A stretch of 64,000 nt of DNA from Macrostomum hystrix (taxonomy: Eukaryota > Animalia > Platyhelminthes): assembly GCA_950097015.1 (NCBI GenBank), contig CATNEN010000031.1:2542001-2606000 (forward strand), in the 5' to 3' direction. The position numbers were made by a program, and so were the translations under genes. The notes under the pieces were generated by a model. That model was not told where the DNA came from, searched no databases, and was given only the letters and a program-made list of their open reading frames with translations. Positions 30,701 to 57,010 of the stretch are shown one piece after another (the first letter of the stretch is position 1; each line of letters starts with the position of its first letter).

Positions 30701-31200
30701 CCCAGTCTCATTACATGCTCTGATCAATCCCCAGTCTCATTACATGCTCTGATCAATCCCCAGTCTCATTACATGCTCTGATCAATCCCCAGTCTCATTA
30801 CATGCTCTGATCAATCCCCAGTCTCATTACATGCTCTGATCAATCTCCAGTCTCATTACATGCTCTGATCAATCCCCAGTCTCATTACATGCTCTGATCA
30901 ATCCCCAGTCTCATTACAGAATTAATGAGTTTCTGTGCATCAATTTTCTCAAAGGAGTTTTCTTTGTTCATTTCGCACATTGTTGATGCGAATATTATTA
31001 GCTTCTATTACAAGTAGGCAGTTGCACAGAGGTAAATACCCACAATTTGGCCTCCGCAGGTGCTTGGTGGCATGGGCTACGTGACCCAGATGCCGGCTGA
31101 GCGGCACTACAGAGATGCCCGCATCACGGAGATCTACGAAGGCACAAGCGAGATTCAGCGGCTGGTCATTGCCAATGAGCTGTTAAAACGCCAGGACTGA
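27747..31200 (+). CDS. ACADS: Mitochondrial short-chain specific acyl-CoA dehydrogenase (about 407 aa, 4 exons)
   Basis: Exons 27747-28258, 28770-29097, 29988-30230, 31060-31200 join in frame. Motifs: [96 protein letters not shown]. Arg-rich N-terminal transit peptide. Confidence 0.96.
28435..28740. repeat. 23-bp minisatellite ATTCATGAAATCCCTATTCTCCC (ACADS intron 1)
   Basis: Tandem copies visible directly. Confidence 0.92.
29600..29950. repeat. 18-bp minisatellite CCCATAATCAGTATTCTT (ACADS intron 2)
   Basis: Tandem copies visible directly. Confidence 0.93.
30277..30918. repeat. 29-bp minisatellite ATGCTCTGATCAATCCCCAGTCTCATTAC (ACADS intron 3)
   Basis: About 22 near-perfect copies. Confidence 0.95.
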
Positions 31201-36384: not shown

Positions 36385-36717
36385 CTTTCAAGGCACATCA
36401 TTTGGTGACACTAGACCCGCAGCCAGCAAGGAGGCCATTCTGCCAATTTCGCTGACTCCTGAGCACACACGCACACAGATACCGGACGCAGGCATACGCT
36501 CACACAGGTGTGTACATCTACCTGACTTTCTCATCGTCAGGCAGTGTGCACTTTTCCTGTGCCTGGGAGGTTGGCCTTCAAATGGCATAAATTGCACGAC
36601 AAGCCCCCAAGCCTTCTCTCCGCGGCTGCGCCCCAAAAAATGTGGCCTCGACGTGGAATCGAACTCAGGGACCTTGGAGCGAGAGGCAAACGCGTCGACC
36701 GCTCTGCCACTCACCCC
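36385..36717 (-). mobile_element. SINE family B, copy c (most complete)
   Basis: A-box GTGGCAGAGCGG, B-box GAGTTCGATTCC, same body. A head-only copy lies inverted at 36303-36338. Confidence 0.8.
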
Positions 36718-36861
36718 AGAGTGAGCGTTAGCGGGGGGATAATTTTTTGTGAGTGTAGCAGCCACCCAGTCCACAGACTGAACTGCTGTACCCACAATAG
36801 GAATGACCGTAAGCCCATGAGATGCCTCTTAACTAAACAGCTTGACACCTTTGCAGCTGGC

Positions 36862-37443
36862 ATGCTGAACGAACTCACATACGAGGAGGCTATGTCGCCG
36901 GAGTACTCCGGCATGACCAGGGCTGCTCACCTCATGCTGCACAGCCGCCTGCCCGAGCGCCAGGTGTTTGACACCCTGAGCCAGCACGCAGTCCTCATGG
37001 CCCTCCGCTTCGACGGCTGTCTGGGCTTCATCGGCGGCCTCATTGACGCGTCAGACGCTTCTGTCGAGGCCGGTTTGGCGCGTGAAATCCGCGAGGAGAT
37101 TGGCGCCGATTTGGCGCCAACCAGGGAGCACTTTTCATGCGCCCACGTCAATGCCGACAGGGGCATTGTTCTGTTCTTCTATGTCATGTCGGTGCCCTCC
37201 GACCTGTACTGCGGCATCGAGCGGGCCGCTCCAGCGTGGCAGGATCACGGGCACGAGACGCTGGGCTGCGTCCGGGTCCCCTGCTACCGACTGGCCGGCA
37301 GGCCGCTTCTGGGCATTGTGGCCTTCATGAGGCACAATTTTGTTGGAAACTCGCGCCAGCAGCTCGCCATCGGCCTGGCCCGGGCTGGAGTGTTCTCGAC
37401 CGATGAAGTGAACCAGATCCTGCTGGATGCCGGCATAGTCTAA
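36862..37443 (+). CDS. NUDT16: U8 snoRNA-decapping enzyme-like Nudix hydrolase (NUDT16/X29), about 193 aa, intronless
   Basis: MALRFDGCLGFIGGLID..., Nudix box GGLIDASDASVEAGLAREIREEIG, DHGHETLGCVRVPCY, NFVGNSRQQL parallel the NUDT16 family. The longer ORF from 36544 runs through a SINE, so the ATG at 36862 (after the acceptor ttgcag) is preferred. Confidence 0.88.
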   Translation: MLNELTYEEAMSPEYSGMTRAAHLMLHSRLPERQVFDTLSQHAVLMALRFDGCLGFIGGLIDASDASVEAGLAREIREEIGADLAPTREHFSCAHVNADRGIVLFFYVMSVPSDLYCGIERAAPAWQDHGHETLGCVRVPCYRLAGRPLLGIVAFMRHNFVGNSRQQLAIGLARAGVFSTDEVNQILLDAGIV

Positions 37444-37525: not shown

Positions 37526-37870
37526 AGGGAGTCGGTGGCAGAGCGGTTGACGCGCTTGCCTCTCGCACCACGGTCACTTATCTCGATTCCGCAGCGAGGG
37601 CACATTCATTTGTGGCGCAGCCGCGGAGCCAGCGGGTTTTCGCTTCTTGTCGGAGAGAAGGCTTCGGGGCTTGTCGTGTAATTTACACCCATGAGGGCCA
37701 ACCTCCAAGGCACAGTGAAGTGTATACACCATGACGATGAGAAAATCAGGGGCAGATGTGAACACCCTGTTTGAGCGTGTGCCTGAGTACGGTATCTGTG
37801 TGCGTGTGTGCTCAGGAGTCCGCGAAATGGGCATTTCCCGCAGCCCTCCTGCAATTATCATAATTATTAT
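37526..37870 (+). mobile_element. SINE family B, copy d
   Basis: Head GTGGCAGAGCGGTTGACGCGCTTGCCTCTCGC, same body, ATT-rich tail. Confidence 0.75.
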
Positions 37871-37994
37871 TGCCTCATTTTCAGTGTCCTATAAATAACT
37901 TTATGAGTAGATATAAAATTATAAGACTAGAAGTGGCCTTAACGCAATATTATAAATTTACATTTTAATATGAGGCAACAAGTAACTTCTATTC

Positions 37995-40900
37995 TGCATT
38001 CTATTCTTCTATTTTTCATTTTTAGTATATTAGACAAGCAAGCAAGCAAGCAAGATTTTCATTTTTAGTATATTAGAAGACTAAGTGCCCTTCGCTACCC
38101 TCTGGGTAGCCTCCCTTGAGTTCTTATCAGTGCGTTATCAAAATTTGCTCTGATGCAATCATTAAAATTGGCACTGGAGCCTCACTGTGCACAAGCTGAA
38201 AACAAGAATGCATTAGAAAAGCCTATTTAAAACTGTTTTTCGAATATTAAATCCCCTTGGCAATGGAATTAAGCTTAATAAAAATACGTGTATATGTGTC
38301 CCCATATTTGGCATCTTTTGGTGAAGAAATGGTGAAAATCGGTTGAGCCGTTCGGGAGAAAATCAATTACAAGCAAGCAAGCAAGATTTTCATTTTTAGT
38401 ATATTAGACTAGCTGCCTTCGCTACCCTCTGGGTAGCCTCACTGGAGTTCTTATCAGTTTGTTATCAAAACTGGCTCTGATGCAATCATTAAAATTGGCA
38501 CTGGAGCCTCACTGCGCACAAGCTGAAAACAAGAATGCATTAGAAAAGCCTATTTAAAACAGTTTTTCGAATATTTAATCCCCTTGGCAATGAAATTAAG
38601 CTTAATAAAAATACGTGTACCGATTCCAGCCCAATTGCGATCTTTTAGTGAAGGAATTTTGAAAATCGGTTGAGCCGTTCGGGAGCTAGTCGATTGCAAA
38701 CATACAAACATACAAGATTTTCATTTTTAGTATATAAGAAGACTAGCTGCCTTCGCTACCCTCTGGGTAGCCTCCCTTGAGTTCTTATCAGTGCGTTATC
38801 AAAATTTGCTCTGATGCAATCATTAAAATTGGCACTGGAGCCTCACTGTGCACAAGCTGAAAACAAGAATGCATTAGAAAAGCCTATTTAAAACTGTTTT
38901 TCGAATATTAAATCCCCTTGGCAATGGAATTAAGCTTAATAAAAATACGTGTATATGTGTCCCCATATTTGGCATCTTTTGGTGAAGAAATGGTGAAAAT
39001 CGGTTGAGCCGTTCGGGAGAAAATCAATTACAAGCAAGCAAGCAAGATTTTCATTTTTAGTATATTAGACTAGCTGCCTTCGCTACCCTCTGGGTAGCCT
39101 CACTGGAGTTCTTATCAGTTTGTTATCAAAACTGGCTCTGATGCAATCATTAAAATTGGCACTGGAGCCTCACTGCGCACAAGCTGAAAACAAGAATGCA
39201 TTAGAAAAGCCTATTTAAAACAGTTTTTCGAATATTTAATCCCCTTGGCAATGAAATTAAGCTTAATAAAAATACGTGTACCGATTCCAGCCCAATTGCG
39301 ATCTTTTAGTGAAGGAATTTTGAAAATCGGTTGAGCCGTTCGGGAGCTAGTCGATTGCAAACATACAAACATACAAGATTTTCATTTTTAGTATATAAGA
39401 AGACTAGCTGCCTTCGCTACCCTCTGGGTAGCCTCCCTGGAGTTCTTATCAGTTCGTTATCAAAACTGGCTCTGATGCAATCATTAAAATTGGCACTGGA
39501 GGCCTCACTGTGCACAAGCTGAAAACAAGAATGCATTAGAAAAGCCTATTTAAAACTGTTTTTCGAATATTTAATCCCCTTGGCAATGGAATTAAGCTTA
39601 ATAAAATTACGTGTACCGATTCCGGCCCATTTGTGATCTTTTGGCGAAGGAATTTTGAAAATCGGTTGAGCCGTTCGGGAGCTAGTCGATTGCAAACAAA
39701 CATACAAGCAAGATTTTCATTTTTAGTATATAAGACTAGCTGCCCTTCGCTACCCTCTGGGTAGCCTCCCTTGAGTTCTTATCAGTGCGTTATCAAAATT
39801 GGCTCCGATGCAATCATTAAAATTGGCACTGGAGCCTCACTGCGCACAAGCTGAAAACAAGAATGCATTAGAAAAGCCTATTTAAAACAGTTTTTCGAAT
39901 ATTTAATCCCCTTGGCAATGGAATTAAGCTTAATAAAAATACGTGTACCGATTCCGGCCCAATTGCGATCTTTTAGTGAAAGAATTTTGAAAATCGGTTG
40001 AGCCGTTCGGGAGCTAGTCGATTGCAAACATACAAACATACAAACAAGATTTTCATTTTTAGTATATTAGATTTTTCGAATATTTAATCCCCTTAGCAAT
40101 AAAGTTAAGCTTAATAAAAATACGTGTACAATTGTCCCCATATTTAGCATCTTTTGGTGAAGAAATGGTGAAAATCGGTTGAGCCGTTCGGGAGAAAATC
40201 AATTACAAGCAAGCAAGCAAGATTTTCATTTTTAGTATATTAGATTACAAGCAAGCAACCAACCAACCAACCATTTCATTTTTAGTATAGTGGACTAGCT
40301 GCCTTCGCTACCCTCTGGGTAGCCTCACTGGAGTTCTTATCAGTACGCGCGTGCGTTATCAAAACTGGCTCTGATGCAATCATTAAAATTGGCACTGGAG
40401 GCCTCACTGTGCACAAGCTGAAAACAAGAATGCATTAGAAAAGCCTATTTAAAACTGTTTTTCGAATATTTAATCCCCTTGGCAATGGAATTAAGCTTAA
40501 TAAAATTACGTGTACCGATTCCGGCTCATTTGTGATCTTTTGGCGAAGGAATTGCGAAAATCGGTTGAGCCGTTCGGGAGCTAGTCGATTGCAAACAAGC
40601 AAGCAAGCAAGATTTTCATTTTTAGTATATAAGTATATAAGAAGACTAGCTGCCTTCGCTACCCTCTGGGTAGCCTCACTGGAGTTCTTATCAGTTCGTT
40701 ATCAAAACTGGCTCCGATGCAATCATTAAAATTGGCACTGGAGCCTCACTGCGCACAAGCTGAAAACAAGAATGCATTAGAAAAGCCTATTTAAAACAGT
40801 TTTTCGAATATTTAATCCCCTTGGCAATGAAATTAAGCTTAATAAAAATACGTGTACCGATTCCGGCCCATTTGCGATCTTTCAGTGAAAGAATTTTGAA

Positions 40901-41937
40901 AATCGGTTGAGCCGTTCGGGAGCTAGTCGATTGCAAACAAGCAAGCAAGCAAGATTTTCATTTTTAGTATATTAGACTAGCTGCCTTCGCTACCCTCTGG
41001 GTAGCCTCCCTGTGAGTTCTTATCAGTACGCGCGTGCGTTATCAAAACTGGCTCTGATGCAATCATTAAAATTGGCACTGGAGGCCTCACTGTGCACAAG
41101 CTGTAAACAAGAATGCATTAGAAAAGCCTATTTAAAACTGTTTTTCGAATATTTAATCCCCTTGGCAATGGAATTAAGCTTAATAAAATTACGTGTACCG
41201 ATTCCGGCCCAATTGTGATCTTTTGGCGAAGGAATTGTGAAAATCGGTTAAGCCGTTCGGGAGCTAGTCGATTGCAAACATACAAACAAGCAAGATTTTC
41301 ATTTTTAGTATAATAGACTAGCTGCCCTTCGCTACCCTCTGGGTAGCCTCACTGGAGTTCTTATCAGTTTGTTATCAAACTGGCTCTGATGCAATCATTA
41401 AAGTTGGCACTGGAGCCTCACTGTGCACAAGCTGAAAACAAGAATGCATTAGAAAAGCCTATTTAAAACTGTTTTTCGAATATTTAATCCCCTTGGCAAT
41501 GAAATTAAGCTTAATAAAAATACGTGTACCGATTCCGGCCCATTTGTGATCTTTTGGCGAAGGAATTGCGAAAATCGGTTGAGCCGTTCGGGAGCTAGTC
41601 GATTGCAAACAAGCAAGCAAGATTTTCATTTTTAGTATAATAGACTAGCTGCCCTTCGCTACCCTCTGGGTAGCCTCCCTGTGAGTTCTTATCAGTGCGT
41701 TATCAAAATTGGCTCTGATGCAATCATTAAAATTGGCACTGGAGGCCTCACTGTGCACAAGCTGAAAACAAGAATGCATTAGAAAAGCCTATTTAAAACT
41801 GTTTTTCGAATATTTAATCCCCTTGCCAATGGAATTAAGCTTAAAAAAATACGTGTACCGATTCGGGCCCATTTGTGATCTTTTGGCGAAGGAATTGTGA
41901 AAATCGGTTGAGCCGTTCGGGAGCTAGTCGATTGCAA

Positions 41938-41970
<33 letters not shown>

Positions 41971-41993
41971 ATTTTCATTTTTAGTATATTAGA
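37995..41993 (-). mobile_element. Tandem array of about 11 non-autonomous mini-Helitrons (about 330 bp each) plus 5'-end fragments
   Basis: Unit 3' ends (CTAG) at about 38080 (variant), 38409, 38743, 39070, 39404, 39736, 40295, 40646, 40977, 41318, 41645. Each unit reads TC...(CTTG/TTTG/TATG)n...hairpin GCTACCC-AGA-GGGTAGC, 8-9 nt, CTAG on the minus strand. Confidence 0.88.
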
Positions 41994-42859
41994 CTAGCAA
42001 TTTGTGCCCCCCTTTGGGGAGCTTAAACCTAAAGGCAACTTTGAAATTATGAAACAATTTTGGTTAGTCAATAAAAAAATGTATAGCAGCTAACGAAGTT
42101 CAGTATTTAAACAAACAAAAATGTAAACTTTTATTGACGACCTAATAAAATGAAATAAAATAAAATCTCTTTTATTGATGCTCCTTTGTCCTTTACCATA
42201 CAAATCTAGACAGTCCCTTGTCCAAATATATACTGATTTAGGTGCTGATTCAGATGCATCTGCAGAAATCGCCACCAGCAAGACCAGAAACCCTGCACAG
42301 TTTGATCAACTGGATCTATTCCCAGGTGTCAGTCTTTCTACTTGCTGGCTTCAAGTCCGCATGGGAGATTGAATTTGAGAAGTCAATAATAGTAAAATAA
42401 GAAATGTAGCAATCAATCCACTTTAGGCCAGTTAATAACTGCAAACTCATTCTCACATATTTCAGTGACAATAAAATTAGTAGTGAGGTGGGGGTTGGGC
42501 AGATGCTTCTGCAGAGTTTGCCACCAGCAAGACCAGAAACCCTGCACAGTTTGATCAAATGGATCTATTCTCAGGTGTCAGTCTTTCTGCTTGCTGGCTT
42601 CAACTCCGCATCGTGGGAGACATGCATGGGGGCTAAGCAATGCACTCAGCACACTCAGCAGCTGGGAACAGCTGTTTACTCTCGAATTAAGCATCACAAG
42701 GAGCCTACAGGTCTGCTAAGGCTACTTCAGACCATGGCTGCATAGTCTCTCCAGTTTAAGCAGAAGAAAGTATGGATCATGAAAGTAGCGAACATGTACT
42801 TTTCAACTGCTTCTCAGGGCCCACACTATGCAGCCAACCTGCTCTCACTACAGTGGCAC

Positions 42860-43170
42860 GAAACCTTACAATGCTAATCTATATTTGTCTACATTTTATT
42901 TTCAAGCTTTTGCTTGCAATTTTCGCACATGAAGTGCTCAATTATTTCTAGCTAATCTATATTTGTCTAATTTTTTTCAAGCTTTTGCTTGCAATTTTCG
43001 CACATGAAGTGCTCAATTATTTCTAGCTAATCTATATTTGTCAATTTTTTTTCAAGCTTTTGCTTGCAATTTTCGCACATGAAGTGCTCAATTATTTCTA
43101 GCTAATCTATATTTGTCTAATTTTTTTCAAGCTTTTGCTTGCAATTTTCGCACATGAAATGCTAAATTAT
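42860..43170. repeat. 75-bp tandem repeat x4 in the Helitron 3' region
   Basis: CAAGCTTTTGCTTGC recurs at 42903, 42978, 43053, 43128. Confidence 0.9.
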
Positions 43171-43416
43171 TTTTAGCCATAATATATCTGCACTGAATTG
43201 TCTTTAACGAAAATTGTTATATTTTAGGTGCTAGTTTTTATATGCTTCAGATTTTGGCTGGTAATAATCTGACTAAATGGCTTTAACTATGGTGGTGCAC
43301 TTGTTTTTAAGGTTTTTAGTGCCACTGTAACAGGATTTGAACTGATATGCCTTCCATGGGCCCATGGTGTTAAACACCATTTACATATCAGGTGGCTCAA
43401 CTTGTGATACCGAGGT

Positions 43417-46400
43417 TCAGTCACTCAGCACCTCAGGGTACACGACATTTCTCGTCCGCTCACCGGAGATCCGGACGCGCACGCTGTCGACATTCTTGGC
43501 CCGGGACAGCGCCGTGTACAGCTGGCCGTGGGCGAAGCAGCCGACAGCTAGGTCGATGCCCACGGTGTCGAGCGACTGGCCCTGCGACTTGTGGATCGTC
43601 AGGCAGAAGCTCGGCTTGACTGGGAACTGCAGCCGCTTGAAGCAGACTGGCAGGTCAGCATTGTTGGGCTCCAGTGGAATCCGCGGCAGCAGGATCTCAT
43701 CTCCAGTGAACTGGCCGGCAGCGACTTTGCAGCGCAGCACATTCTCGCCCAGCTCCAGGATGATCAGCCGGGTGCCGTTGCACAGCCGTGGCGGATTCAG
43801 ATTCCGCAGCAGAACCAGCGGCATGCCCACCTTGAGCTTCAGCAGGTGAGCAGGGAAGTTCGGAGCATCCAGCTGATTCAGCAGCTCCGGAGGAAAGTGC
43901 GTGGCCGCTTCCTCGTCAGCCACGCTGTCCACTGAGCGATACTCGCGCAGTTGGCCTGGGAACATGGCCAGGCACTCGTTGTTGATCGCGTCAACCGCAT
44001 CGTTGTAGGGCGCCAGAATGGCTCGGCTGGCAAAGTAGCCGTCGCGCTCCGCTGACGCCTCGAACGAAGGGTACACGAACTGGATCAGCTCGGACAGCGG
44101 TGCCTCCGTCGGAATGATGATCTTGGCAGGAAGGCAGACCGTGTCGTCTGACTGATCGGCTACCCCAGAGCCGATCTGTGTGGGGTTGGCAGGTAAATGC
44201 ACGAGAACTGCAGCCTGTGAGGTTATCTAAAAACAGCATGAACAAAGCTTACCTGCATGAGCAGCTGCATATAGCGATGGTACAGCTCAGCATCAGCACA
44301 GCTCTGCAGCCGGATGTTCTTGGATAGGCGGTGCCTCCGGAACAAAGACCACAGCGGGGACTTGCTAACACACGCCAGGATGTTGTTAGCGCGCGTGCCA
44401 TTTTTCACCACCGGCAGCAGCTGGCGAAAGTCTCCAGCGCAGACCACGACGATTCCGCCGAACGGGCAGTCCTGCTTCCGCAGGTCTCGCAGACTGCGGT
44501 CGACAGCCTCCAGGTCCTTCCGGTTTGTCATGGAGATCTCGTCCCAGACGATCAGCCGTACAGTGCGAAAGACTGCGGCCAGCTTAGACTGCGCTCGGAC
44601 AGAACACACGTCCTTGTCAGAGCGAACCAGCCGCACTGGGATCTTGAATCTGGCGAAAAATGTAGATTGAGACTGAATGAGCAGGAGAACATTAAGTGTG
44701 AATTTGATTTCCATTAAAAAACGCACGTTGAATGCGCCGTCTGCCCGCCTGGCAGCAGGGTGGCTGCGATTCCCGACGACGCAACAGCCAGGGCGACTTC
44801 CCCTCGACTCCGCACAAACGCCAGCAAAACCTCCAGCAGGAAGGTCTTGCCAGTGCCTGCCGGAGCGTCAATGAAATGCAGGCCGCCCGAGCCAGCGACA
44901 AGATCCACAGTCACAGCCTCGTAGATGGCCATCTGCTCGGCCGTGAGCATTGGCAGCCGCATCTCGGTGATCTCCGCCTGTTCGACCGTGTCAAACTGCA
45001 GCGGCCCGACTTGCGGCATTGCAGAGGCAGCAGGCAGTCCGTACTCTTGCAGACTGCGGCCGCCCATTGACGTCAGCATGCTCTGCAGCTCCCGCAGAGC
45101 CAGGTCGCTGACTTCCTCGGCGCTTAAGTCCGGTTGGTGGAAGCGCAGGTCTTCGCAGAGATCCTCTGCAAACCTGCTCCACAGATCAGCGCCGTCGTCT
45201 GGCTCGCCCCAGATGAGAACGACAGCCAGCAGGTGCCTCAGAGCTCGCGGCATTCGGCTCTGGACAGCCTCAGTCATGCAGCGATGCCAGTGATCATCAC
45301 GCTGCAGCAGGCCGAGAGCCATGCAGGCGGCCTTGGCGCTGGCACAATGCACGCCGGCCACGGTCTGCAGCGACTCGAAGCTGGTCGGTCCTCGCACGTG
45401 CAGCAGCAACAGCCGCAGGTAGAACAGGTCACCAGCTCTAGGACTGACCGTGTACATCCGCGCAATGTTGGTGTTGCGCTTCACGCCGGGATGTCCTTCG
45501 ACATCGACGCCCTGCTTGGCTCGACGCCACTCTCTCGCACTCGGGTGCCACACGAAGAAGGTGGGCACCTCTGTGTAGAGTAGCAGGCGGGCGAACTCGT
45601 CAGTGCGGCACAGCTTGAAGAAGGCCGTCAGTGTCGAGTCTCGTGGCGCCTTTGCTCTGGCGCCCGCGGTCTGCTCGTTGAAGTACACGAGCTGCTCTTC
45701 CGACTTGTGCACACAGAGTCGGATGACCGCTGGGAACCTGTTGTGCACCTGGGCAAAGGTGAGGATATTTTTTGAGCATCAGAGCTGCTGAAAAAAACGT
45801 AATGCAGTACTAAAAGCACAGGCAATGAAAGCAGAGCAGAGCAATTACCTCAAAGGCCAAGATGGTGTTAACAGCTTCCATCGGACCAATGTAGCGTGCA
45901 GACAGGTACTCGGAGATTTCATCACGGGGCTTCTCCGGCTGCTCAGATTGAGCACTCGGCTGAGCTTCAGCAGCTCCTGCGGCGGCGGCGACTTTGAAAA
46001 CCGCCATGTCGCCATTCTTCATCAAGTACTTGATCACGTACTTGACAGACTTGACAGTGGCACAAACCTCTACGTTCAAATGGCACGCGAACTGTAGCAG
46101 CAGGTCAGGGTTGTATGGCACCACCCACCTGGTGATTGGAGGGAAGCAGCGGCTTGCAGAGCACAGAAATGCTATGGCCACGCAGCTACTGACTCACCTG
46201 TTGTCCATTTGGATGCTGCGACCCTTGAACAGTTTGTCCACCGTGAAGCCTCCCATCTCAGGGGAGCGCCTCCTGTAGAACGGATAGCCGCTGTCGCTCG
46301 TCAGCGTCACCGGCTGGAAGTCCTTCGGGAAGCTCTTGCTGCACTTGCCGTTCTCCATGCAAGGGCAGGCCGGGTTCAGCTCGCCACACGGCCCGTGGAT

Positions 46401-49400
46401 CATGTGGGTCTTGACCAGCTCGTGCAGCACTGGCTGCCGCTGTGGGTCTGGGATCTCCGCAGACACGATGGCATCGTAGCGATCCGGGGTGACTCGACTC
46501 CCGTTCGCCAGCCAGAGCAGGAAGTGCACATGGGGAAGGCCTGAGGCGAGTTGATAAAAGCATGCGGACTCGTTATTCCAGGCTGTTAATATTGCCAATG
46601 TCTGCATGAAAATCTGATTTTACTCACCGCGCTTCTGGTACTCCAAGGAGCACACATGCGCAGCCTCCTTGCCAAAACGCTTCCTGAGCACTTCAAGCAG
46701 AGCCTTTTTCTTCAGTTCAAAGACTCGAGTCACAATGTCCGGGCGGTCCTCTGCCCGCTGACCGGGCAGCAGCTGCACGCTGATTTCCGGCCACTTCGGG
46801 TTGCACGTGGCTGTGACAAACAGGTCCGGCTTGCCGAACTTGTGCACGTAGGCCATTGCATCTTGCAGCCGCTCCATCAGGTACCTGGGTCCACCTACAA
46901 AGCTGGAAGACAGGTACACATGGGCAGGCTTACCAATCTCATTGGGGTCTCTCTCGGTGCTCCTGCCATCAGCAGCGAACAGAGCGTCTCGCAGGCCGCT
47001 GTAGGTCTCGCTGCGCAGGTCGTTCTGATGAGTGCGCAGGTACAGCAGCCTCTCGGACTCGATCTTGGCAGCCATGTCAACCAGGTACTGCTGGAAGAGG
47101 CGCCTGCCGTGGTGCAGCACGTTGAACTGGCCAGCTCGCACCATGATTTCGCTGGCGTAGTACTTCATGGGCGTCAGCTTCCGCCCATTCGCCATCTGCA
47201 GCTCTGGGTGCCAGCCGTCCTCGCCATTCGGGAACAGCAGCACGTACTCCAGAGGGTCGTAGGACCGGTGGGTCTCGGATATGCGCTGGACTTCGCCTCC
47301 GCGCAGTCGAATCACAACGTCACGGCTTGTCGGTGCGTCCTCGGAACCACCGACAACCAGGATGCCAACCTCATTGGCAGTAGGGAGATTGTAACGCCTG
47401 GGAATGAACAGGAATGGAATTGGTACAGCAGGTACTTCACAGAATCAACTGCACAGACTGAACAGTATAAGTGCAGGCGAAATAGGATCCCAACCAGCAG
47501 CTCCATAACACAGCTCACTCACCGAATGTGCTCCCCAGCTGGTCGTCGGTCCGGGTGAATCACAATTCGCGCATCTCCCAGCTCAGGGTCGCCACTGATC
47601 CGCTGAGCAGCGGCTCGCAGGCTCTGCACATAGCCGTTGCACTCGTGCAGCACAGTTTGCAGCAGCTCCAGCAGCTCCGGCTTCACCTTCTGGCTGAGGC
47701 TCAGGCGGCTCTCCAGCTCGCGGTCCGTGAAGTACACCTGCCAGCCATGCGGCACGGCTGAGGTGTCGGCAAGCAGCGGCCCCATGTTGTGATGCAGCTG
47801 GCCGCTGATGATGAAGCTGGGACTCCAGCCAGGCACCAGTCTGAGCCTCGCACCCAGAGATGTCAGGTGCAGCACAGAGTTGTAGCTCCTGATGTTAGCC
47901 AGGAACTCTGCACTGAGGCGGTGCTGCCCCGTGTACAGATCTGCCAGGACCTGCGGCATGGAACGGGTGGGCAGCTTCACCTTGCCCTTGGCGCAGCAGA
48001 AATTGCTCGTCTCCTTGGCCCACAGCAGGGCGCCGCAGTCATTGCAGGCGCGGTTCATTGGGCCGCATTGGTGAGCCGGGGCTTCTGGCATCACCGGCTC
48101 GGCATGCCTGTGAGCAGGGTTTGAGTAGGGGTTGAGCCGAGTTTATTAAGAGGGTACATTGATTTGATTGACATTGCTTTCCATGCTAGTGATTTATTTG
48201 TGTCAGCAGATTAAGCTGATTTAAACGAATAAATGCAAAATAACAAAAGCAAGTTACTCACATCTGCTCAGCCTGTGCTCCAGTGTCAGCACATGAGCTG
48301 GGGCTGTCAGCTGGCATCGCTCTCGGGCCCTTGGCTTTCTTGGCCCTCTTGGCAGGAGTTTTGCTTGCTGCCAAGCTTGGAAACTCTGCATCTGAAAGGG
48401 CTTGCAAAGGCTCTCGAAGTCTCAGTGACTCGTAATGCTCATGGCGCAAGAGCACGCGCACAATCGCATTAGGAGGATAGAGATTAGCCCTGAAATACTG
48501 CATCACATTACCATTGGCCTGGTAAATGACCAGGTCCACATTAAAGCAGCGGCTCAACAAAGAGGCAACTTCGTCTGAAACATAAGTGCCTGTTTGAAAA
48601 GAGGAACTCACAATGTCATCAGCACTCTCAGGTGCGATGAGGCCATCTGCAACCAACTGTGGCATGAGTTCTGCAACACGGCAAGACAAATCCTGCCGCA
48701 AGGAGGCTGCGTCAGTTTCTAGCGGGGTTCCACGCAGCTGATCACACACAGCATAAAAGAAGCAATTGCCATCACCAATAATAGGGATTACCTGCAACTG
48801 CTCAAATGGTACAATAGCTTCCATACCTTGCTGCTGGGTGTCCGACCTAAGTTGGCAATGCAGTGAAAATAAAGCACAGCTGCATTTACAGAATTTTTAA
48901 ACCAATTGTTGGACTGCAGGTTGAGTTACTCAAATCTACAGCAAAAAAATCAACACTTATGAGGCAATTTAGAAAAAAACTAAATAAAACCATAATTATG
49001 TTATGTAACGTTATTTTATAGAGCCTCATAAAACTCACTTGGAAACCAAAGCTCCACGGCGACGAATCTGCTCGGCTTCCAGTCGGGCAGCCCGCTCTGC
49101 CTCAGTCTCAGCATCTCTGCGCTGAGCATCCCGCTGCCGCTGTTCCTCCAGTCGGGCAGCTCGCTCTGCCTCAGTCTCAGCATCTCTGCGCTGAGCATCC
49201 CGCTGCCGCTGTTCCTCCAGTCGGGCAGCTCGCTCTGCCTCAGTCTCAGCATCTCTGCGCTGAGCATCCCGCTGCCGCTGTTCCTCCAGTCGGGCAGCTC
49301 GCTCTGCCTCAGTTTGAGAGGCTCGCTTCTCAGCCATTCGCTGACGTCGTTCTTCCAAACGGACCTCGCGATCGGCCTCGGATTCAGCTTGTCGCCGTCG

Positions 49401-49448
49401 CTTGGCATCGCGACTTTTCTTCAAACTGCTTGCGCCGCGTCGAACCAT
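43417..49448 (-). CDS. Helitron Rep-helicase with N-terminal 23-aa repeats and OTU domain (about 1716 aa, 9 exons)
   Basis: Exons 49448-49039, 48846-48262, 48107-47523, 47397-46628, 46540-46198, 46128-45849, 45748-44727, 44649-44253, 44175-43417 join in frame. Motifs: OTU GDGNCFF...HYESL; CNDC...FCCAKG; RRYNLPTANEV; KPDLFVTATCNPKWPEI; EYQKRGLPHVH (HUH); YVIKYLMK (Y2); PIF1-type DAPAGTGKT, IVWDEISM, GDFRQLLPV, TIHKSQGQS, HGQLYTALSR. Confidence 0.93.
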
Positions 49449-50049
49449 GATTGAGAACTGAAAAGTGAAATGAAATGATAAGTTGAGAGATAATGAAAGG
49501 CTTGAAAGAGAGATAGGTTGTGAAATTTGGATTTGAATTTCGATGTCTGAAGAATCAGATAAGGAGCCTTTATAAACCACACTAATTTGCAAGCTATATA
49601 TCATCACAGTGGGCTGAATCGGATATTATCTTTAGACCTAGGGTAAAAATCGATAAAACGGACCTCTGACCGCTTGAAATCTTAAAAACCGATGGAATGG
49701 GGTGAGGGCTCTCCAGCCCGTGCGTGCACATTTGGGGGCAAGAGGGGGAATAATGTACATTGCCTGCGCCAGCCTAGAATAGCCGGTAAGGACTTGGCTT
49801 GGGTAGGCCAGTGCGCCCAAATTTCAATATGATAGCGTCTAAGTTATCTCAAAGGCCTTTCACGTCTCTAAACTCTCAACTCTAAATTGATGTGAAAAAA
49901 TGCGTCCACTGACCGATTACCACACGATGATAGTCTTGAGTCTTGATGAAACTTGTATGTCACTGTTGTGCCTTGAAATCTGACAGTGCTGTGCTTTCGA
50001 ATCAGTCATTATTGTCTTAAATAAATATCATTGTATATTTACAAATTCG

Positions 50050-50945
50050 GAGCCTATGTATCTATCAATTCTAATTTCTGAGCCTAGATTTCAATCGATT
50101 CTGTGCCTAGATACCCATCGATTCTCAGCCTAGATTTCAATCGCTTCTGTGCCTAGATACCCATCGATTCTCAGCCTAGATTTCAATCGCTTCTGGGCTT
50201 AGATATCTTTCAATTCTGAGCTTAGACATCTATACGTGTATTCTGAGCCTTGATTTCAATTGATTCTGAGCTTAGATATGTATCGATTCTGAGCCTAGAT
50301 TTCTATCGATTCTGAGCCTAGATAACTATCAATGCTGAGCCTAGATTTCTATCGATTCTGAGCCTCGATAACTATCAATGCTGAGCCTAGATAACTATAA
50401 AAATGTTGAGCCTAGATATTTATAAAAATGTTGAGCCTAGATGTCTATCAATGCTGAGCCTAGATAACTATAAAAATGTTGAGCCTAGATATTTATAAAA
50501 ATGTTGAGCCTAGATGTCTATCAATGCTGAGCCTAGATAACTATAAAAATGTTGAGCCTAGATATTTATAAAAATGTTGAGCCTAGATGTCTATCAATGC
50601 TGAGCCTAGATAACTATAAAAATGTTGAGCCTAGATATTTATAAAAATGTTGAGCCTAGATGTCTATCAATGCTGAGCCTAGATAACTATAAAAATGTTG
50701 AGCCTAGATATTTATAAAAATGTTGAGCCTAGATGTCTATCAATGCTGAGCCTAGATAACTATAAAAATGTTGAGCCTAGATATTTATAAAAATGTTGAG
50801 CCTAGATGTCTATCAATGCTGAGCCTAGATAACTATAAAAATGTTGAGCCTAGATGTCTATCAATGCTGAGCCTAGATATCTATCAATGCTCAGCCTAGA
50901 TATCTATCAATGCTCAGCCTAGATATCTATCGATTCTGAGCCTGG
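50050..50945. repeat. GAGCCTAGAT-based minisatellite with a 73-bp higher-order unit in the Helitron leader
   Basis: Monomers of 25+25+23 bp recur as a trimer (e.g. 50383, 50456). Confidence 0.9.
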
Positions 50946-51533
50946 ATTTGTATTTATGCTATTTGGCTGTGTCATTGTTGTGCATGGGATTCGGTTCGGT
51001 TCGCTTCGCTCTGCTAGAAAAAGGCCGATCACTTGGATCAATTCAGTTCTCAGCTGTAGCCTTTTGGTGTATGATGTGAATATGCTATTTGATTGCAAAA
51101 ACTCAATAAATAAATAAATAAAATAATAAAATATCACACTGCCAGCAGTTAACAGAAGCCAGCTCAGCCTGTGCACATTGGGCATAATTATCTTGCCAGT
51201 GGGGTTGACACAGCTATGCACATTTGGGTGAGAAATTTCTTATCAGTACGCTCGCCTAACAAAACTGGCCCTGATGCAATCATTAAAATTGGCACTGGAG
51301 CCTCACTGTGCACAAGCTGAAAACAAGAATGCATTAGAAAAGCCTATTTAAAACTGTTTTTCGAATATTTAATCCCCTTGGCAATGGAATTAAGCTTAAT
51401 AAAAATACGTGTATAGTTGTCCCCATATTTGGCATCTTTTGGTGAAGAAATGGTGAAAATTGGTTGAGCCGTTCGGGAGAAAATCAATTACGAACAAGCA
51501 AGCAAGATTTTCATTTTTAGTATATTAGATAGA

Positions 51534-52164
51534 CTAGCTGCCTTCGCTACCCTCTGGGTAGCCTCCCTGTGAGTTCTTATCAGTTCGCGCGTGCGTTATC
51601 AAAACTGGCTCTGATGCAATCATAAAAATTGGCACTGGAGCCTCACTGTGCACACGCTGAAAACAAGAATGCCTTAGAAAAGCCTATTTAAAACTGTTTT
51701 TCGAATATTTAATCCCCTTGGCAATGGAATTAAGCTTAATAAAAATACGTGTATAGTTGTCCCCATATTTGGCATCTTTTGGTGAAGAAATGGTGAAAAT
51801 TGGTTGAGCCGTTCGGGAGAAAATCAATTACGAACAAGCAAGCAAGATTTTCATTTTTAGTATAATAGATAGACTAGCTGCCTTCGCTACCCTCTGGGTA
51901 GCCTCACTGGAGTTCTTATCAGTTCGTTATCAAAACTGGCTCTGATGCAATCATTAAAGTTGGCACTGGAGCCTCACTGTGCACAAGCTGAAAACAAGAA
52001 TGCATTAGAAAAGCCTATTTAAAACAGTTTTTCGAATATTTAATCCCCTTGGCAATGGAATTAAGCTTAATAAAAACACGTGTACCGATTCGGGCCCATT
52101 TGTGATCTTTTGGCGAAGGAATTGCGAAAATCGGTTAAGCCGTTCGGGAGCTAGTCGATTGCAA

Positions 52165-52201
<37 letters not shown>

Positions 52202-52224
52202 ATTTTCATTTTTAGTATATTAGA
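51534..52224 (-). mobile_element. Two further mini-Helitron units directly upstream of the autonomous element
   Basis: Units 51534-51872 and 51874-52224; same sequence family as the left array. Confidence 0.88.
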
Positions 52225-52406
52225 AGATAGAAGATATGCGAATTTTTTATTACGATCCACTGCAATAACAGCTCTGCAAGTTTAACCTTTTCTGTATGGT
52301 CCCTTTGCCAAATCATATTGACAATGTGCCTTTCGTTCACTTTTCGACATTCCTATACCACTTGTGAATAAAAATGAGTAGTTCTTGCATAGCCAAAATA
52401 CGACAC

Positions 52407-52591
52407 TGTAGTGTGCGTACGCACGTGAGCCAGGCCCAGGTGTACACCTGGGTCGTTTGATTGGTTGCGGAGCGGGGTGGGTGTCGCCACCCCAGTTCTA
52501 GCAAATAATATATGGACGCGCGCTCAGCGTGGCAGTAAAGATTGAGAGTTTTGTCTGCTCACTAAAAATAGCCTCGGCCTTAGTTATTACA
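52407..52591 (+). repeat. 5' LTR
   Basis: Direct repeat of 56826-57010. Confidence 0.97.
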
Positions 52592-52623
52592 ATGGCATCG
52601 CAAGCACCGAACCCTAGTGCACC

Positions 52624-55600
52624 ATGACTGAGCAAATTTCTCTCGCGCCTCCCGGCCAGTTTGTTATCGATAGCGATTGCCACTCAACTGCACAGCGCTG
52701 GACTGCATGGGCTCGCCGGTTCGCCACATACATTAACGCAGCTGGGATCCATGACGCAAAGCGAGGGCAGCACCTGCTTTTGTACGCCGCGGGAGAGGAG
52801 CTGCAGACCATCGTCGAAGAGAATGAAATTGACGCTGGGGAAGACTACAGCAGCCTCGCAAAGAATATCCAGGAATTCTGGGACGGCAAGAACAGCATCG
52901 TGTTCCTCCGCTTCAAGTTCGAGACCTGCAGACAACAGCAAGGCGAGACAATCGACCAGTGGTACCAGCGCCTGCGCAAGGCGGCGGAGCCGTGCGAGTT
53001 TGGAGCGATCAAGGACTCGCTGATCCGAGACAAAATCGTCGCCTACTGTGACTCCGAGAGGCTGAGGAGAGACTTCCTACAGAGCAAAGACATCACCCTG
53101 ACAGATGTGCTGAGGAAGGCGAGAGCCAAAGAAGCGGCGGAGCAGCAGGCCAGCGCGATGGAGAACGGCAGGCCAGGTGAGCCGCAGCAGCAACTCGCAG
53201 CCATCCGGAGAGCCGAGCAGCCACCAGGGCCGCAGGTGCGCTGCAATCGGTGCGGCAGGCCAGGGCACTCCACGTGCGCCGCGGCGCAAGGCAAGAGCTG
53301 CAGAAAGTGCGGAAAGCCAGGCCACTTCGCCCGAGCTTGCAGGTCCAGGCAGGAGGCGCCCCAAAGCAATTCGAATGCTGTCGCGATGCTGCAAGGTGAG
53401 ACCAGCTACGAGAGGGTGGACGACCCGGACACCGGCATATTCAAGGTCGACCAGGAGGAGCAATCCGCCCACACAGTAGCTGAGATCAACGGCACCAGAC
53501 TGTCAGTGCTGATCGACAGCGGGGCGGCTCGCAATGTGATCAACCGCGCAACGTTTGAGAGCCTTAAACAGCGGCCGCGTCTGCAAGCAGCCTCTGACAG
53601 GTTGTTCGCGTACGGCTCGGACCGGCCGATGCAACTCATCGGCAAGGCGGCGATGTCCATCCGCTTATTCGGCCGACGGGCGGTCGCCACATTTCACGTT
53701 GTCGAAGGCAGAGGCATCACCATCATCGGCAGGCAGACGGCCACTCAAATGGAAATCCTGCGGATCGGACCACCACCGACGGTCGATCATCAGGTGCTGC
53801 AGGTCGCGGAAGCGGAGGCGGCTGTCGACAGCCTCCTCGGCAACACGAGATCCAGTGGAATGCCCCAAGATGCCCTTGGCAGGATACTGCGCAAGTACTC
53901 CAGCGTGCTCAGCGGCATCGGCTGCTTCACCGGGCCGCCAGTCAGCATCCACCTGACCGACAACGCCCGACCGGTTTGTCACGCACCGTCTAAGGTACCG
54001 ATTCACCTGGCCGAGGCAGTGGACAAGGAGCTGCAGCTACTGGAGCAGCTCGGAATCATCGAGCCCGTCGACGGACCAGTTCCGTGGGTCGCGCGGATGG
54101 TCGTTGTGCCCAAGAAGGAGCCAGGCGAAGTGCGGATCACACAGGACCTCCGCGATGTCAATCGCTATGTCATCCGCGAGCGTCACCAGATTCCGACTTT
54201 TGAAGAGGTGACGGGAGACATGGCCGGCAGCACCGTCTTCTCGGAACTGGACATCGCGAAGGCGTTCTACCAGGTGCCTGTAGCAGAAGAATGCCGCAAT
54301 CTGCTGACATTCTCGACACCCCGAGGACTTCGTCGTCTCACTCGGCTGTGCATGGGCCTGTCCACCTCACAGGAGATCCTACAGAGCGTGATGTGCAGAG
54401 TGCTGTCAGGCCTGCCCAACGTAAAATGGATCCACGACGACGTGGTCGTGTTCGGCCGCACGATGGCGGAGCACAACAGCAGCCTCGAGGCCTGCCTGGC
54501 CCGCCTGGCGCAACACGGCATCACGCTAAATGCTCGAAAATGCAGGTTGGCACGCAGCAGCATTGAGTTTATGGGAATGCGACTGACGGCCGAAGGAGTC
54601 CAAGCCACAGAAAGCAAGGTCGCCGCCGTTCAAGAATTCAAGGAGCCAGAGACGATAAGCCAACTTCGATCGTTCTTGGGCCTCGTGAATTATCTCGCAG
54701 TATTCACGCCACAGCTGGCCAAGGTGGCGGAGCCGCTGCGACGCCTGACCCGGAAGAACACCGACTGGCAGTGGGGCGCCGACCAGGCCAGCGCCTTTGC
54801 GCAGCTAAAGCGCAGCATTGCGGAGCCGACAACGCTGGCATTCTACGACAAGCGGCTACGGACACAGCTGATTGTGGACGCGGGACCAACCGGACTCGGC
54901 GCAATCCTGGCGGAAGTACAGCACGACGGCAGTTCGCGGCCAGTCGCATACGCGAGCCGGACCCTCTCCGACGTAGAGCGGCGATATTCGCAGACCGAAA
55001 AAGAGGCGCTCGCCGTGAAGTTCGGCTGCCTGAAGTTTGAGTACTACTTGTATGGATCGCCCGAATTCACGGTGATCTCCGACCACAAGCCGCTGACAGC
55101 CATGTATGCGCCAGGGTCACGGCCGCCTCCACGAGTCGAGCGTATGGCGCTGCGTATCCAGCACCTGGTATTCAAGGTCGAATACCAGCCAGGAGCGTCC
55201 AATGCTGCAGACATACTCAGCAGGCAGCCTCTAAACGCTGAAGGAAGTAGGACCAGCGAGCAGCTGAGAGAGGCCTACATAAACGAGGTAGCGCAGGCGG
55301 CTGTCCCGAAAGCGCTCACGCTCGAAGACATCCGCAAGAGCTCAGCCAGCGACCCAGTTATCCGGGCAGCGATAGCAGCGATGCAAGGCGGCCAATGGGA
55401 CCGCTCTAGCGCTGAGATGCGGTCACTCCACGCGCTGCGAGAGGAGCTGTCGGCGGTAGACGGAGTTCTTCTTCGGCATCAGCGGATTGTCGTGCCAGCA
55501 GCTCTACGGCAGCAGATGCTCGAGCTGGCGCACCAAGGACACCAGTGCTCGCAGAAGACGACCGCAAGGCTCAGCAGCAAGGTCTGGTGGCCGAGAATGG

Positions 55601-56607
55601 CAACACAAGCGGAGGAGTTCGTCAGTCGGTGCCGCAGCTGTGTCATCACGTCTCACACGCCAGCCGTCCGGGCTACGCCTCTGCAGCCGACGCCTATCCC
55701 TAAGGGCGCCTGGTTGTCGATTGGGGCTGACTTTGTAGGCCCGATCAACAACAACATGCTGCTGGTGTGCGTGGACAGATACTCGAGATTCCCAGAGGTG
55801 CAGCTCATGCAGACAACGACGGCCGAGGCACTGGTCCCGCGCCTGCGAGAAATGTTCGCGCGATTTGGCATCCCGCAGGAGCTCGTAACTGACAACGGGC
55901 CGCCATTTTCATCCAAGGAGTTTGGCCGTTTCCTAGAAAGCTACGGCATCAAGCACCGCCTCATCACGCCTTACTACCCAGCCGCCAACGGCATGACAGA
56001 GCGGCTGAACCGCTCAATCAACAAGGTCGTGCGGGCGGCAATCGAGGAGCGGCGCGACTGGAGGGCTGCTCTGGACGAGTGGCTGCTGGCCTACAGGAAC
56101 ACGCCGCACACAGCCACGGGCCGCGCGCCAGCCGAGCTGCTGATGGGCCGGCGACCAAATGATGTCATCCCCGCCGCCCGGCCATCCCAGCGCGTCCGCA
56201 TCAACGAGCAGCGGCTGCGAGAGATGGATGCGAGCGCCAAGGCCGCGATGAAGCAGCGAGCGGACGCCAGGAGGCGGCCACGGCGGCACGAAATCCAGGT
56301 CGGCGATTCGGTGCTGCGACGGCGAGTCGGTGCCAGCAAGACGCAAACGCCATTCGAGAGCGGCGCCTGGACAGTCCAGCGGGTGGCCGGCAACTCGCTG
56401 ATGCTGCGTCGTGACGGCGCGGCCTGCTGGCGGCATTGCACGGCGGTCAAGGTCGTCACCCCAGAATCAGACGACGCTGGTGCCAGGCCGCAGGCTGCCG
56501 CGCCAGAAACTCCAGGCGAGGCGGCGCGGAACCCGGCCGAATCCCCGGTGGCGCTGCGCCCGCACCCCCGCGCCGCACGGGGTGGCGTGAAGATCTACAA
56601 GGACTAA
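52624..56607 (+). CDS. Gag-Pol polyprotein, single ORF, 1327 aa
   Basis: Paired Zn-knuckle region (CNRCGRPGH...CRKCGKPGHFARAC), aspartic protease LIDSGA, RT (ELDIAKAFYQ, WIHDDVVVFG), RNase H (VDAGPTGLGA, YSQTEKEALA, SDHKPL), integrase HHCC plus GADF...TDNGP...NGMTER. Order PR-RT-RH-IN indicates Ty3/Gypsy. Confidence 0.96.
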   Translation: MTEQISLAPPGQFVIDSDCHSTAQRWTAWARRFATYINAAGIHDAKRGQHLLLYAAGEELQTIVEENEIDAGEDYSSLAKNIQEFWDGKNSIVFLRFKFETCRQQQGETIDQWYQRLRKAAEPCEFGAIKDSLIRDKIVAYCDSERLRRDFLQSKDITLTDVLRKARAKEAAEQQASAMENGRPGEPQQQLAAIRRAEQPPGPQVRCNRCGRPGHSTCAAAQGKSCRKCGKPGHFARACRSRQEAPQSNSNAVAMLQGETSYERVDDPDTGIFKVDQEEQSAHTVAEINGTRLSVLIDSGAARNVINRATFESLKQRPRLQAASDRLFAYGSDRPMQLIGKAAMSIRLFGRRAVATFHVVEGRGITIIGRQTATQMEILRIGPPPTVDHQVLQVAEAEAAVDSLLGNTRSSGMPQDALGRILRKYSSVLSGIGCFTGPPVSIHLTDNARPVCHAPSKVPIHLAEAVDKELQLLEQLGIIEPVDGPVPWVARMVVVPKKEPGEVRITQDLRDVNRYVIRERHQIPTFEEVTGDMAGSTVFSELDIAKAFYQVPVAEECRNLLTFSTPRGLRRLTRLCMGLSTSQEILQSVMCRVLSGLPNVKWIHDDVVVFGRTMAEHNSSLEACLARLAQHGITLNARKCRLARSSIEFMGMRLTAEGVQATESKVAAVQEFKEPETISQLRSFLGLVNYLAVFTPQLAKVAEPLRRLTRKNTDWQWGADQASAFAQLKRSIAEPTTLAFYDKRLRTQLIVDAGPTGLGAILAEVQHDGSSRPVAYASRTLSDVERRYSQTEKEALAVKFGCLKFEYYLYGSPEFTVISDHKPLTAMYAPGSRPPPRVERMALRIQHLVFKVEYQPGASNAADILSRQPLNAEGSRTSEQLREAYINEVAQAAVPKALTLEDIRKSSASDPVIRAAIAAMQGGQWDRSSAEMRSLHALREELSAVDGVLLRHQRIVVPAALRQQMLELAHQGHQCSQKTTARLSSKVWWPRMATQAEEFVSRCRSCVITSHTPAVRATPLQPTPIPKGAWLSIGADFVGPINNNMLLVCVDRYSRFPEVQLMQTTTAEALVPRLREMFARFGIPQELVTDNGPPFSSKEFGRFLESYGIKHRLITPYYPAANGMTERLNRSINKVVRAAIEERRDWRAALDEWLLAYRNTPHTATGRAPAELLMGRRPNDVIPAARPSQRVRINEQRLREMDASAKAAMKQRADARRRPRRHEIQVGDSVLRRRVGASKTQTPFESGAWTVQRVAGNSLMLRRDGAACWRHCTAVKVVTPESDDAGARPQAAAPETPGEAARNPAESPVALRPHPRAARGGVKIYKD

Positions 56608-56825
56608 ACCAAGGACTGAAAACGAACTGACTTTTCTACTGACATTAACATCACATGCACGCTTTTCTTTGCAAGTCCGATGCGACTATCATTTCGAGTG
56701 TTTTATTTCCTCCAATAGCTGCATATTTTTTTTCGGTCGAGTTCTTTTTCGTTTTTTTCGACATCTTGCTTCTCGAATTCGTTCTTTTTTTGTCTCCCCA
56801 CAGTTTCTGTTCGAAGGGGGAGAGA

Positions 56826-57010
56826 TGTAGTGTGCGTACGCACGTGAGCCAGGCCCAGGTGTACACCTGGGTCGTTTGATTGGTTGCGGAGCGGGGTGGG
56901 TGTCGCCACCCCAGTTCTAGCAAATAATATATGGACGCGCGCTCAGCGTGGCAGTAAAGATTGAGAGTTTTGTCTGCTCACTAAAAATAGCCTCGGCCTT
57001 AGTTATTACA
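56826..57010 (+). repeat. 3' LTR
   Basis: Direct repeat of 52407-52591, preceded by the PPT. Confidence 0.97.

Follow-up and report, generated by a model that had tools for sequence, protein, structure and literature searches.

The minus strand of the 64-kb window (the whole stretch of DNA that was analysed) carries a train of Helitrons, transposons of the rolling-circle type, at 52227-38014. The train consists of 13 complete mini-Helitrons of about 330 bp, four fragments that have only a 5' end and one Helitron of 9,540 bp with a Rep-helicase (RepHel) gene, all in the same orientation. Tandem Repeats Finder reports this DNA as arrays with a period of 327-342 bp (38035-40067, 40274-41954 and 51260-52177). 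An earlier note on this DNA had proposed that the apparent 330-bp satellite is a chain of complete mini-Helitrons with a 5' TC and a 3' hairpin plus CTAG, and 13 such units could indeed be read. They are 327-351 bp long and amount to about 4.7 kb in total. When the whole window was scanned for the diagnostic motifs, these were found on the minus strand and in the train region only. The 5' motif occurs 18 times, the hairpin-CTAG end of the minis 13 times and the 3' end of the large element once.

All units have the same layout. After the 5' head TCTAATATACTAAAAATGAAAATC come a (CTTG/GTTT)n tract that varies, the conserved body, the hairpin and 12-13 nt ending in CTAG. The mini hairpin has a 7-bp stem (GCTACCC-AGA-GGGTAGC), the mini 3' end reads GGCTACCCAGAGGGTAGCGAAGG(G)CAGCTAG, and in every mini TC and the next 5' head come directly after it. 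The train contains 14 CTAG|TC joints, 13 after mini 3' ends and one after the large element. At some joints the earlier note had seen extra bases; these come from short duplications of the 5' terminus (TCT-TCT..., TCTA-TCTA..., and TTATATAC twice) that span the first 3-8 bases at several units. A tetranucleotide microsatellite, (GCTT)n with GTTT and GTAT variants, lies 25 nt from the 5' end in every unit (e.g. 52160-52200); its position is fixed and its length varies from 2 to 8 repeats. No terminal inverted repeats were found, and weak internal inverted matches occur in two units only. The open reading frames (ORFs) across the diagnostic joints have no usable start codons. The mini hairpin and the invariant body motif gave no match in two scans of metagenome contigs.

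The order of the units was read along the minus strand, and the minis were assigned to two subfamilies, A-type and B-type. The first unit, U1 (51874-52227), is a complete A-type mini with the 5' end TCT-TCTAATATAC, and its (GCTT)n tract is the longest in the train. At 52228 a host A precedes the unit; an alternative start at 52234 is possible (TCTTCTA is duplicated), and an A precedes that start too. U2 (51534-51873) is a complete B-type mini, which shares the TCTA-TCTA 5' duplication with the large Helitron next to it. This full-length element (41994-51533; 9,540 bp) has a 5' TC and a 3' hairpin plus CTAG. It is followed by five complete A-type minis joined by CTAG|TC, D1-D5 (40295-41993), with 3' ends at 41645, 41318, 40977, 40646 and 40295. 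Two incomplete units come next, the 44-bp 5' fragment D6a (40251-40294) and the 178-bp B-type unit D6b (40073-40250), which has no 3' end. Six complete minis, D6c and D7-D11 (38081-40072), have their 3' ends at 39736, 39404, 39070, 38743, 38409 and 38081, the last of them mutated to CTTAG. The 45-bp 5'-only stub D12a (38036-38080) follows, and the 22-bp 5'-only stub D12b (38014-38035) closes the train. Thus two complete minis (U1 and U2) lie upstream of the large element and 11 (D1-D5, D6c and D7-D11) downstream, and the boundaries at 51533 and 41994 agree with the earlier description of the RepHel element as one more unit of the chain in the same orientation.

The large element begins with TCTATCTAATATAC right after the CTAG of U2 and terminates with ...GCTCCCCAAAGGGGGGCACAAATTGCTAG right before the TC of D1. 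Its 3' hairpin is GCTCCCC-AAA-GGGGGGC, then 12 nt ending in CTAG, so both element types have a 7-bp stem, a 3-nt loop and a 12-nt tail. The RepHel gene (43417-49448, minus strand) was modelled with nine exons (49448-49039, 48846-48262, 48107-47523, 47397-46628, 46540-46198, 46128-45849, 45748-44727, 44649-44253 and 44175-43417) and eight GT-AG introns. The introns are 69-192 nt long, with GTGAGT or GTAAGC donors and YAG acceptors, and the spliced model has no stop over 1,716 amino acids (aa). Pfam searches on successive minus-strand ORFs identified Helitron_like_N (E 3.5e-47) and, in exons 7-9, PIF1, Pif1_2B and UvrD_C_2. The Rep motifs are present in the spliced model (HUH LPHVHFLL at aa 785 and YxxxY KYVIKY at aa 928), and so are the helicase motifs (Walker A GTGKT at aa 1289 and Walker B WDEISM at aa 1368). 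From the N-terminus the protein carries basic STPR-like repeats, an OTU-like exon, Helitron_like_N and the Pif1 helicase. The stop-free model agrees with the intactness claimed in the earlier note, and in silico the RepHel gene is coding-intact and apparently functional.

Two parts of the N-terminal half were also inspected. In exon 1 a 69-bp coding repeat (49078-49388, minus strand; 3.4 copies) gives a basic 23-aa RLEEQRQRDAQRRDAETEAERAA repeat at the N-terminus; it weakly resembles STPR DNA-binding repeats and is shared by a few distant RepHel proteins (P0017, P0013, P0047 and P0143). Exon 2 (48262-48846, minus strand) is an OTU-like cysteine-protease exon with the motif GDGNCFF, for which the Pfam OTU match (E 0.014) is under the curated cut-off. 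As its borders are of phase 2/2, skipping or adding this exon could keep the frame.

The gene model was obtained by comparison with homologues. A search against 1.84 billion representative proteins returned thousands of RepHel relatives, and tblastn with full-length relatives covered 49.4 to 43.4 kb in blocks that switch frame. Among named proteins the nearest are two UniRef entries of Macrostomum lignano, whose tblastn blocks are 63-87% identical; the host is probably a macrostomid flatworm. Because the frame changes at the block boundaries are those of short introns, the 9-exon model was adopted. A dead, frameshifted RepHel, which the many short minus-strand ORFs had suggested, was rejected because the junctions read as eight GT-AG introns. 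Intron 7 is a clean 77-nt GT...AG insertion in comparison with the relatives L001 and L002, and L001-L006 do not have it. For intron 8, a length of 38 nt was rejected in favour of 77 nt, since the shorter intron would leave 13 extra residues that are missing from the LL-xIGxG of homologues.

Public short-read contigs were aligned to 43400-49399 (6,000 letters). Spliced contigs were joined exactly at intron 3 (in an RNA library) and at intron 6, with many unspliced pieces besides. The family is therefore transcribed and spliced as modelled at two introns. In one run about 180 DNA contigs matched at 90-100% likeness, which means that the RepHel family is multi-copy. Contigs with 90-99% likeness were also found in wastewater metatranscriptomes (runs X15-X18), and one of them was spliced at intron 3. 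These matches indicate that the host or a close relative lives in such wastewater and that the RepHel family is transcribed there.

No endonuclease domain was found by Pfam in any RepHel exon, and no subterminal inverted repeats are present. For these two reasons a Helentron/HINE, which the internal microsatellite had brought to mind, was rejected. The large element is a canonical Helitron (RepHel, Helitron1-type), with a fusion of Rep and Pif1, TC and hairpin-CTAG termini and no terminal inverted repeats. Its 5' untranslated part contains a tandem repeat of about 870 bp (50076-50947; 23-bp unit with 73/146-bp higher orders), and its 3' untranslated part contains four 75-bp tandem repeats (42873-43177). 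In the relative L002 the 5' untranslated region is much shorter and has no block like that at 50076-50947. In L001, RPA-like OB-fold ORFs lie 3' of RepHel (L001:5736-6835), and the large element (41994-43416) has none of these. Downstream of the stop codon, the large element and L001 share the last ~29 bp only.

The minis and the large element are related at both ends. The earlier note had matched the first ~293 bp of the element (51237-51529) with the mini body, and the match could be extended to 297 bp (51533-51237, minus strand), with a short (CTTG)n microsatellite inside and 91-97% identity. This head is 97.0% identical to U2, 96.2% to D9/D11 and 91-93% to the A-type units, and the similarity stops about 30 bp short of the mini hairpin position. 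At the other end, the 29-nt terminators of the mini (e.g. 51874-51902) and of the large element (41994-42022) agree at 19/29 positions in register. Among the ~420 CTAG-ending 29-mers in the window this is the best non-self match (binomial P 5e-6, or 2e-4 without the CTAG), and the differences in the stem keep the pairing (A-T to C-G, and T-A to T.G). These comparisons indicate that the two terminators are diverged homologues rather than unrelated sequences with like geometry.

The relative L001, which comes from other sequencing runs, has 85-90% nucleotide identity in the gene and a terminator that agrees with that of the large element at 24/29 positions; since unrelated sequence follows this terminator, L001 is a solo insertion. 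L002 has a homologous 5' head with the microsatellite (L002:100-125). Given the shared 297-bp head and the 19/29 terminator with pairing kept, the sequence evidence indicates that the minis arose within this Helitron lineage by deletions that spared both ends; they are derivatives at the level of the family and not of this exact copy. An origin of the mini 3' end in place, from 51236-51200, was tried and dropped, as the similarity is weak, comes from an optimised alignment and is not significant.

The units were then compared with each other. U1, D1-D5, D6c, D7, D8 and D10 form the A-type subfamily, and U2, D6b, D9, D11 and the large-element head form the B-type. Identity is 88-90% between the subfamilies and 94-100% within them; the differences (10-12%) are mostly in a 40-bp block, and the two types are interleaved along the train. 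At 54 informative columns the units share variants as a mosaic to which no tree fits. Private changes, counted along the train, number 0-1 per unit in most units. Two subfamilies, shared mosaic variants and few private changes together mean that the units differed before they were joined.

This heterogeneity bears on the proposal of the earlier note that the train is a mixed rolling-circle concatemer, in which a circle would have been replicated for many rounds and the multimer integrated once. A Helitron circle carries just such exact CTAG|TC joints (PMC5876387), and bat and plant tandem arrays have been interpreted in this way (PMC2267711; PMC12628747 citing Xiong et al. 2016). However, copies of one template are identical at birth and should later differ by private mutations only, whereas here the differences are shared, private mutations are almost absent and two subfamilies alternate. 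Unit lengths and microsatellite tracts vary too, and a 9.5-kb unit cannot share a 330-bp template. The truncation points also differ from each other, unlike those in repeated copies of one truncated circle. A single concatemer is thus contradicted for the train as a whole and is rejected as highly improbable; it could survive for the D8-D11 dimer pair only.

The known arrays that have been explained by circles resemble the train in part. For Helibat of Myotis lucifugus, head-to-tail junctions and tandem arrays are described (Pritham and Feschotte 2007, via PMC2267711 and PMC5876387). As summarised in those sources, the bat arrays have the same exact CTAG|TC with no host base between, the same orientation and mostly non-autonomous copies; they are read as rolling-circle repeats of one element, whereas the present train has heterogeneous units and a coding-intact autonomous element. 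In plant centromeres, tandem arrays of truncated Helitrons with an excess of 5' ends are known (Xiong, Dooner and Du 2016, via PMC12628747). By that secondary account, they share with the train more 5' ends than 3' ends, short Helitron derivatives and a satellite-like character. The plant arrays are described there as centromeric, with numerous 5' ends but only one 3' end and with copy numbers that reach into the hundreds, and they are attributed to the copying of circles without a terminator. In contrast to what is reported of them, the present train occupies a euchromatic, intergenic site, both ends are preserved in most of its units, and no two truncations are alike.

Recombination within the array has to be considered as well. 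D8 and D10 are 100% identical and D9 and D11 98.3% identical, so D8-D9 and D10-D11 are products of one recent duplication of an A+B dimer, which indicates that ordinary tandem-repeat dynamics contributed to the train. If these dynamics had done all the work, one or two chance adjacent insertions would have been expanded by unequal crossing-over, slippage and gene conversion with no further transposition. The recent dimer duplication would be expected in this case, and so would mosaic variants that fit no tree and a small number of private mutations. But unequal exchange cannot make two subfamilies that are 10-12% apart in a 40-bp block, set a 9.5-kb element exactly in register or end three truncations exactly on the first base of a unit. 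Had a mini recombined with the head of the large element, the latter would have been deleted or duplicated. Satellite dynamics are therefore an improbable source of the whole train. The phrase of the earlier note that a satellite is being generated here was also too strong for a 4.7-kb intergenic array of 13 units.

Satellites are known to arise from rolling-circle elements in another way. DINE-TR1 of Drosophila and Cg170 of oyster are associated with Helentron/HINE elements (PMC7492417, PMC12628747), and Heli2Xen minisatellites occur in Xenopus (PMC12001565). As in the present locus, rolling-circle elements give rise to satellite-like DNA and a microsatellite lies inside the element. The repeats of those systems lie inside a single element of Helentron/Helitron2 type, whereas here the repeat unit is a whole canonical Helitron.

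Tandem arrays are error-prone for assemblers, all the more so with units as alike as D8 and D10, and the repeat region might have been collapsed, expanded or joined as a chimera. Against this, the units differ individually in length, microsatellite, subfamily and truncations, as artefactual repeats do not, and unique host sequence is present at both flanks. Moreover, in a DNA run that appears to be independent, short-read contigs agree with the large element at every base over stretches of 240-580 bp. An assembly artefact is scarcely credible.

The polarity of the train is marked: its 5' ends number 18 and its 3' ends 14. The three 3'-truncated units (D6a, D6b and D12a; 44, 178 and 45 bp) are each cut at a different internal point, and each of them abuts an exact new TCTAATATAC 5' end. 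As a random deletion would hit the first base of a unit in about 1/330 of cases, three exact cases are not due to chance. At the upstream edge the host A is followed by the 5' T, and at the downstream edge there is the 22-bp 5' stub and no canonical CTAG|T boundary. Such precise 5' ends, together with 3' ends that vary and the host A upstream, favour serial joining at resident 5' ends. In experiments with Helraiser, a reconstructed bat Helitron, the 5' end was always joined precisely and the 3' end could be truncated or read through (PMC4778049). By analogy, the polarity of the train mirrors this asymmetry.

In our view the best explanation, with a probability of about 0.55, is that the transposase joined the units in series to resident 5' ends and that local duplication followed. 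Different members of the family, including the large element and some 3'-truncated copies, would have been joined one after another. At each step the transposase would have attached the newcomer precisely to the 5' end of a resident element. The A|T target could have been supplied by the upstream base and the resident 5' T, or the resident 5' end could itself have been cut like a target site. The array would then have been lengthened by one or more local duplications, that of the A+B dimer among them. Repeated self-targeted insertion, the second possibility raised in the earlier note, agrees with this in so far as it fits the exact 5' ends, the variable 3' ends and the host A; it fails for D8-D9 and D10-D11, which are equal by plain local duplication. 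A parallel case is the r1 region of maize, where two unlike adjacent Helitrons are joined by CTAG|TC and are read as consecutive insertions (Du et al. 2008, PMC2267711). Different Helitrons joined in this way, and consecutive insertion as the favoured mechanism, are common to both loci. The maize pair differs in that it consists of two large gene-carrying elements, whereas here 18 5' ends stand in a row, with satellite-size and truncated units and a transposase gene inside.

The units might also have arrived in groups. In that case ready-made oligomers would have been mobilised from other trains by read-through of internal 3' ends and then rearranged by recombination. Such read-through is documented experimentally and in bats (PMC4778049), and the identical D8-D9 and D10-D11 are possibly two copies of one mobilised dimer. 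Yet this merely shifts the origin of trains to another locus, and the three truncated units with exact next 5' ends would still require 5'-specific joining. We regard arrival in ready-made blocks as unlikely for the train.

Several points weigh against serial joining at resident 5' ends or against parts of it. At the internal joints a G, not an A, stands before the resident T, so either non-canonical cleavage is needed or all additions took place at the upstream edge. The micro-duplications at the 5' ends (TCT-TCT and TCTA-TCTA) are unexplained by this model. Gene conversion or unequal exchange within an older array can likewise produce mosaic variants, and blocks of several units could have arrived together by 3' read-through from another train. 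The unit order of the array rests on the assembly. The spliced contigs, with 90-99% likeness, stem from a multi-copy family and are not assignable to this copy. A second mini locus is absent within the 64-kb window, and the order of insertion, the A|T target and the targeting of resident 5' ends are what we infer.

A further animal case is found on the large Y of Drosophila pseudoobscura, where Helitron-1_DPe forms tandem clusters (bioRxiv 10.1101/2021.06.02.446622). It is likewise an animal Helitron with many head-to-tail junctions. The Drosophila clusters differ in being a Y-linked, megabase-scale amplification of a single family, whereas mixed minis and an autonomous partner are present here. 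Head-to-tail Helitron trains are already documented in bats, maize and flies, heterogeneous CTAG|TC trains are also on record, and no new kind of element or mechanism is revealed by this locus. A search of the available papers for Macrostomum and Helitron together gave no description of Helitron trains.

The train lies at a euchromatic, intergenic site. A Nudt16-like ORF (36544-37443, plus strand) flanks it on the same side as an Rpb3-like ORF and an acyl-CoA dehydrogenase exon, and CLCA/VWA-like exons (57-61 kb, minus strand) lie on the opposite flank. About 175 bp upstream of the train there is a Ty3/Gypsy long terminal repeat (LTR) retrotransposon (52407-57010, plus strand). Its 185-bp LTRs are 100% identical with TG...CA ends, a 5-bp duplication (GACAC) is present, and the 1,327-aa gag-pol frame (zinc knuckle, protease, reverse transcriptase, RNase H and integrase) is open; judged by its sequence, this element looks very young. 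In the downstream flank (37870-37990, minus strand) a short inverted repeat, TTGCCTCAT ... ATGAGGCAA, with its arms about 110 bp apart, may be a small foldback element or chance, and one further CTAG|TC without a hairpin occurs there. A 29-bp tandem repeat at 30270-30918 (22 copies, 97% identity) is unrelated to the Helitrons.

The origin of Helitron tandem arrays has been debated since 2007, between multimers made by rolling-circle replication and insertion beside a resident element. The locus offers a natural example that speaks clearly against multimers and in favour of 5'-end-specific joining. It adds a compact, well-resolved animal example, in which a coding-intact autonomous element stands in register with satellite-size derivatives. 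It also carries a lesson for repeat annotation, as what a repeat finder reports as a satellite can consist of complete transposons stacked one after another. If the host is Macrostomum-like, and thus a laboratory animal, the 1,716-aa RepHel and the 330-bp mini would be a compact pair for direct tests of target choice. As a tentative extension, the Helitron transposase of the flatworm lineage may prefer the 5' end of a resident Helitron, so that mixed elements would pile up and seed euchromatic proto-satellites genome-wide. If this is true, the polarity of the train, with its precise 5' ends, 3' ends that vary, 5' stubs and host A at the upstream edge only, would be the natural footprint of such 5'-end homing.

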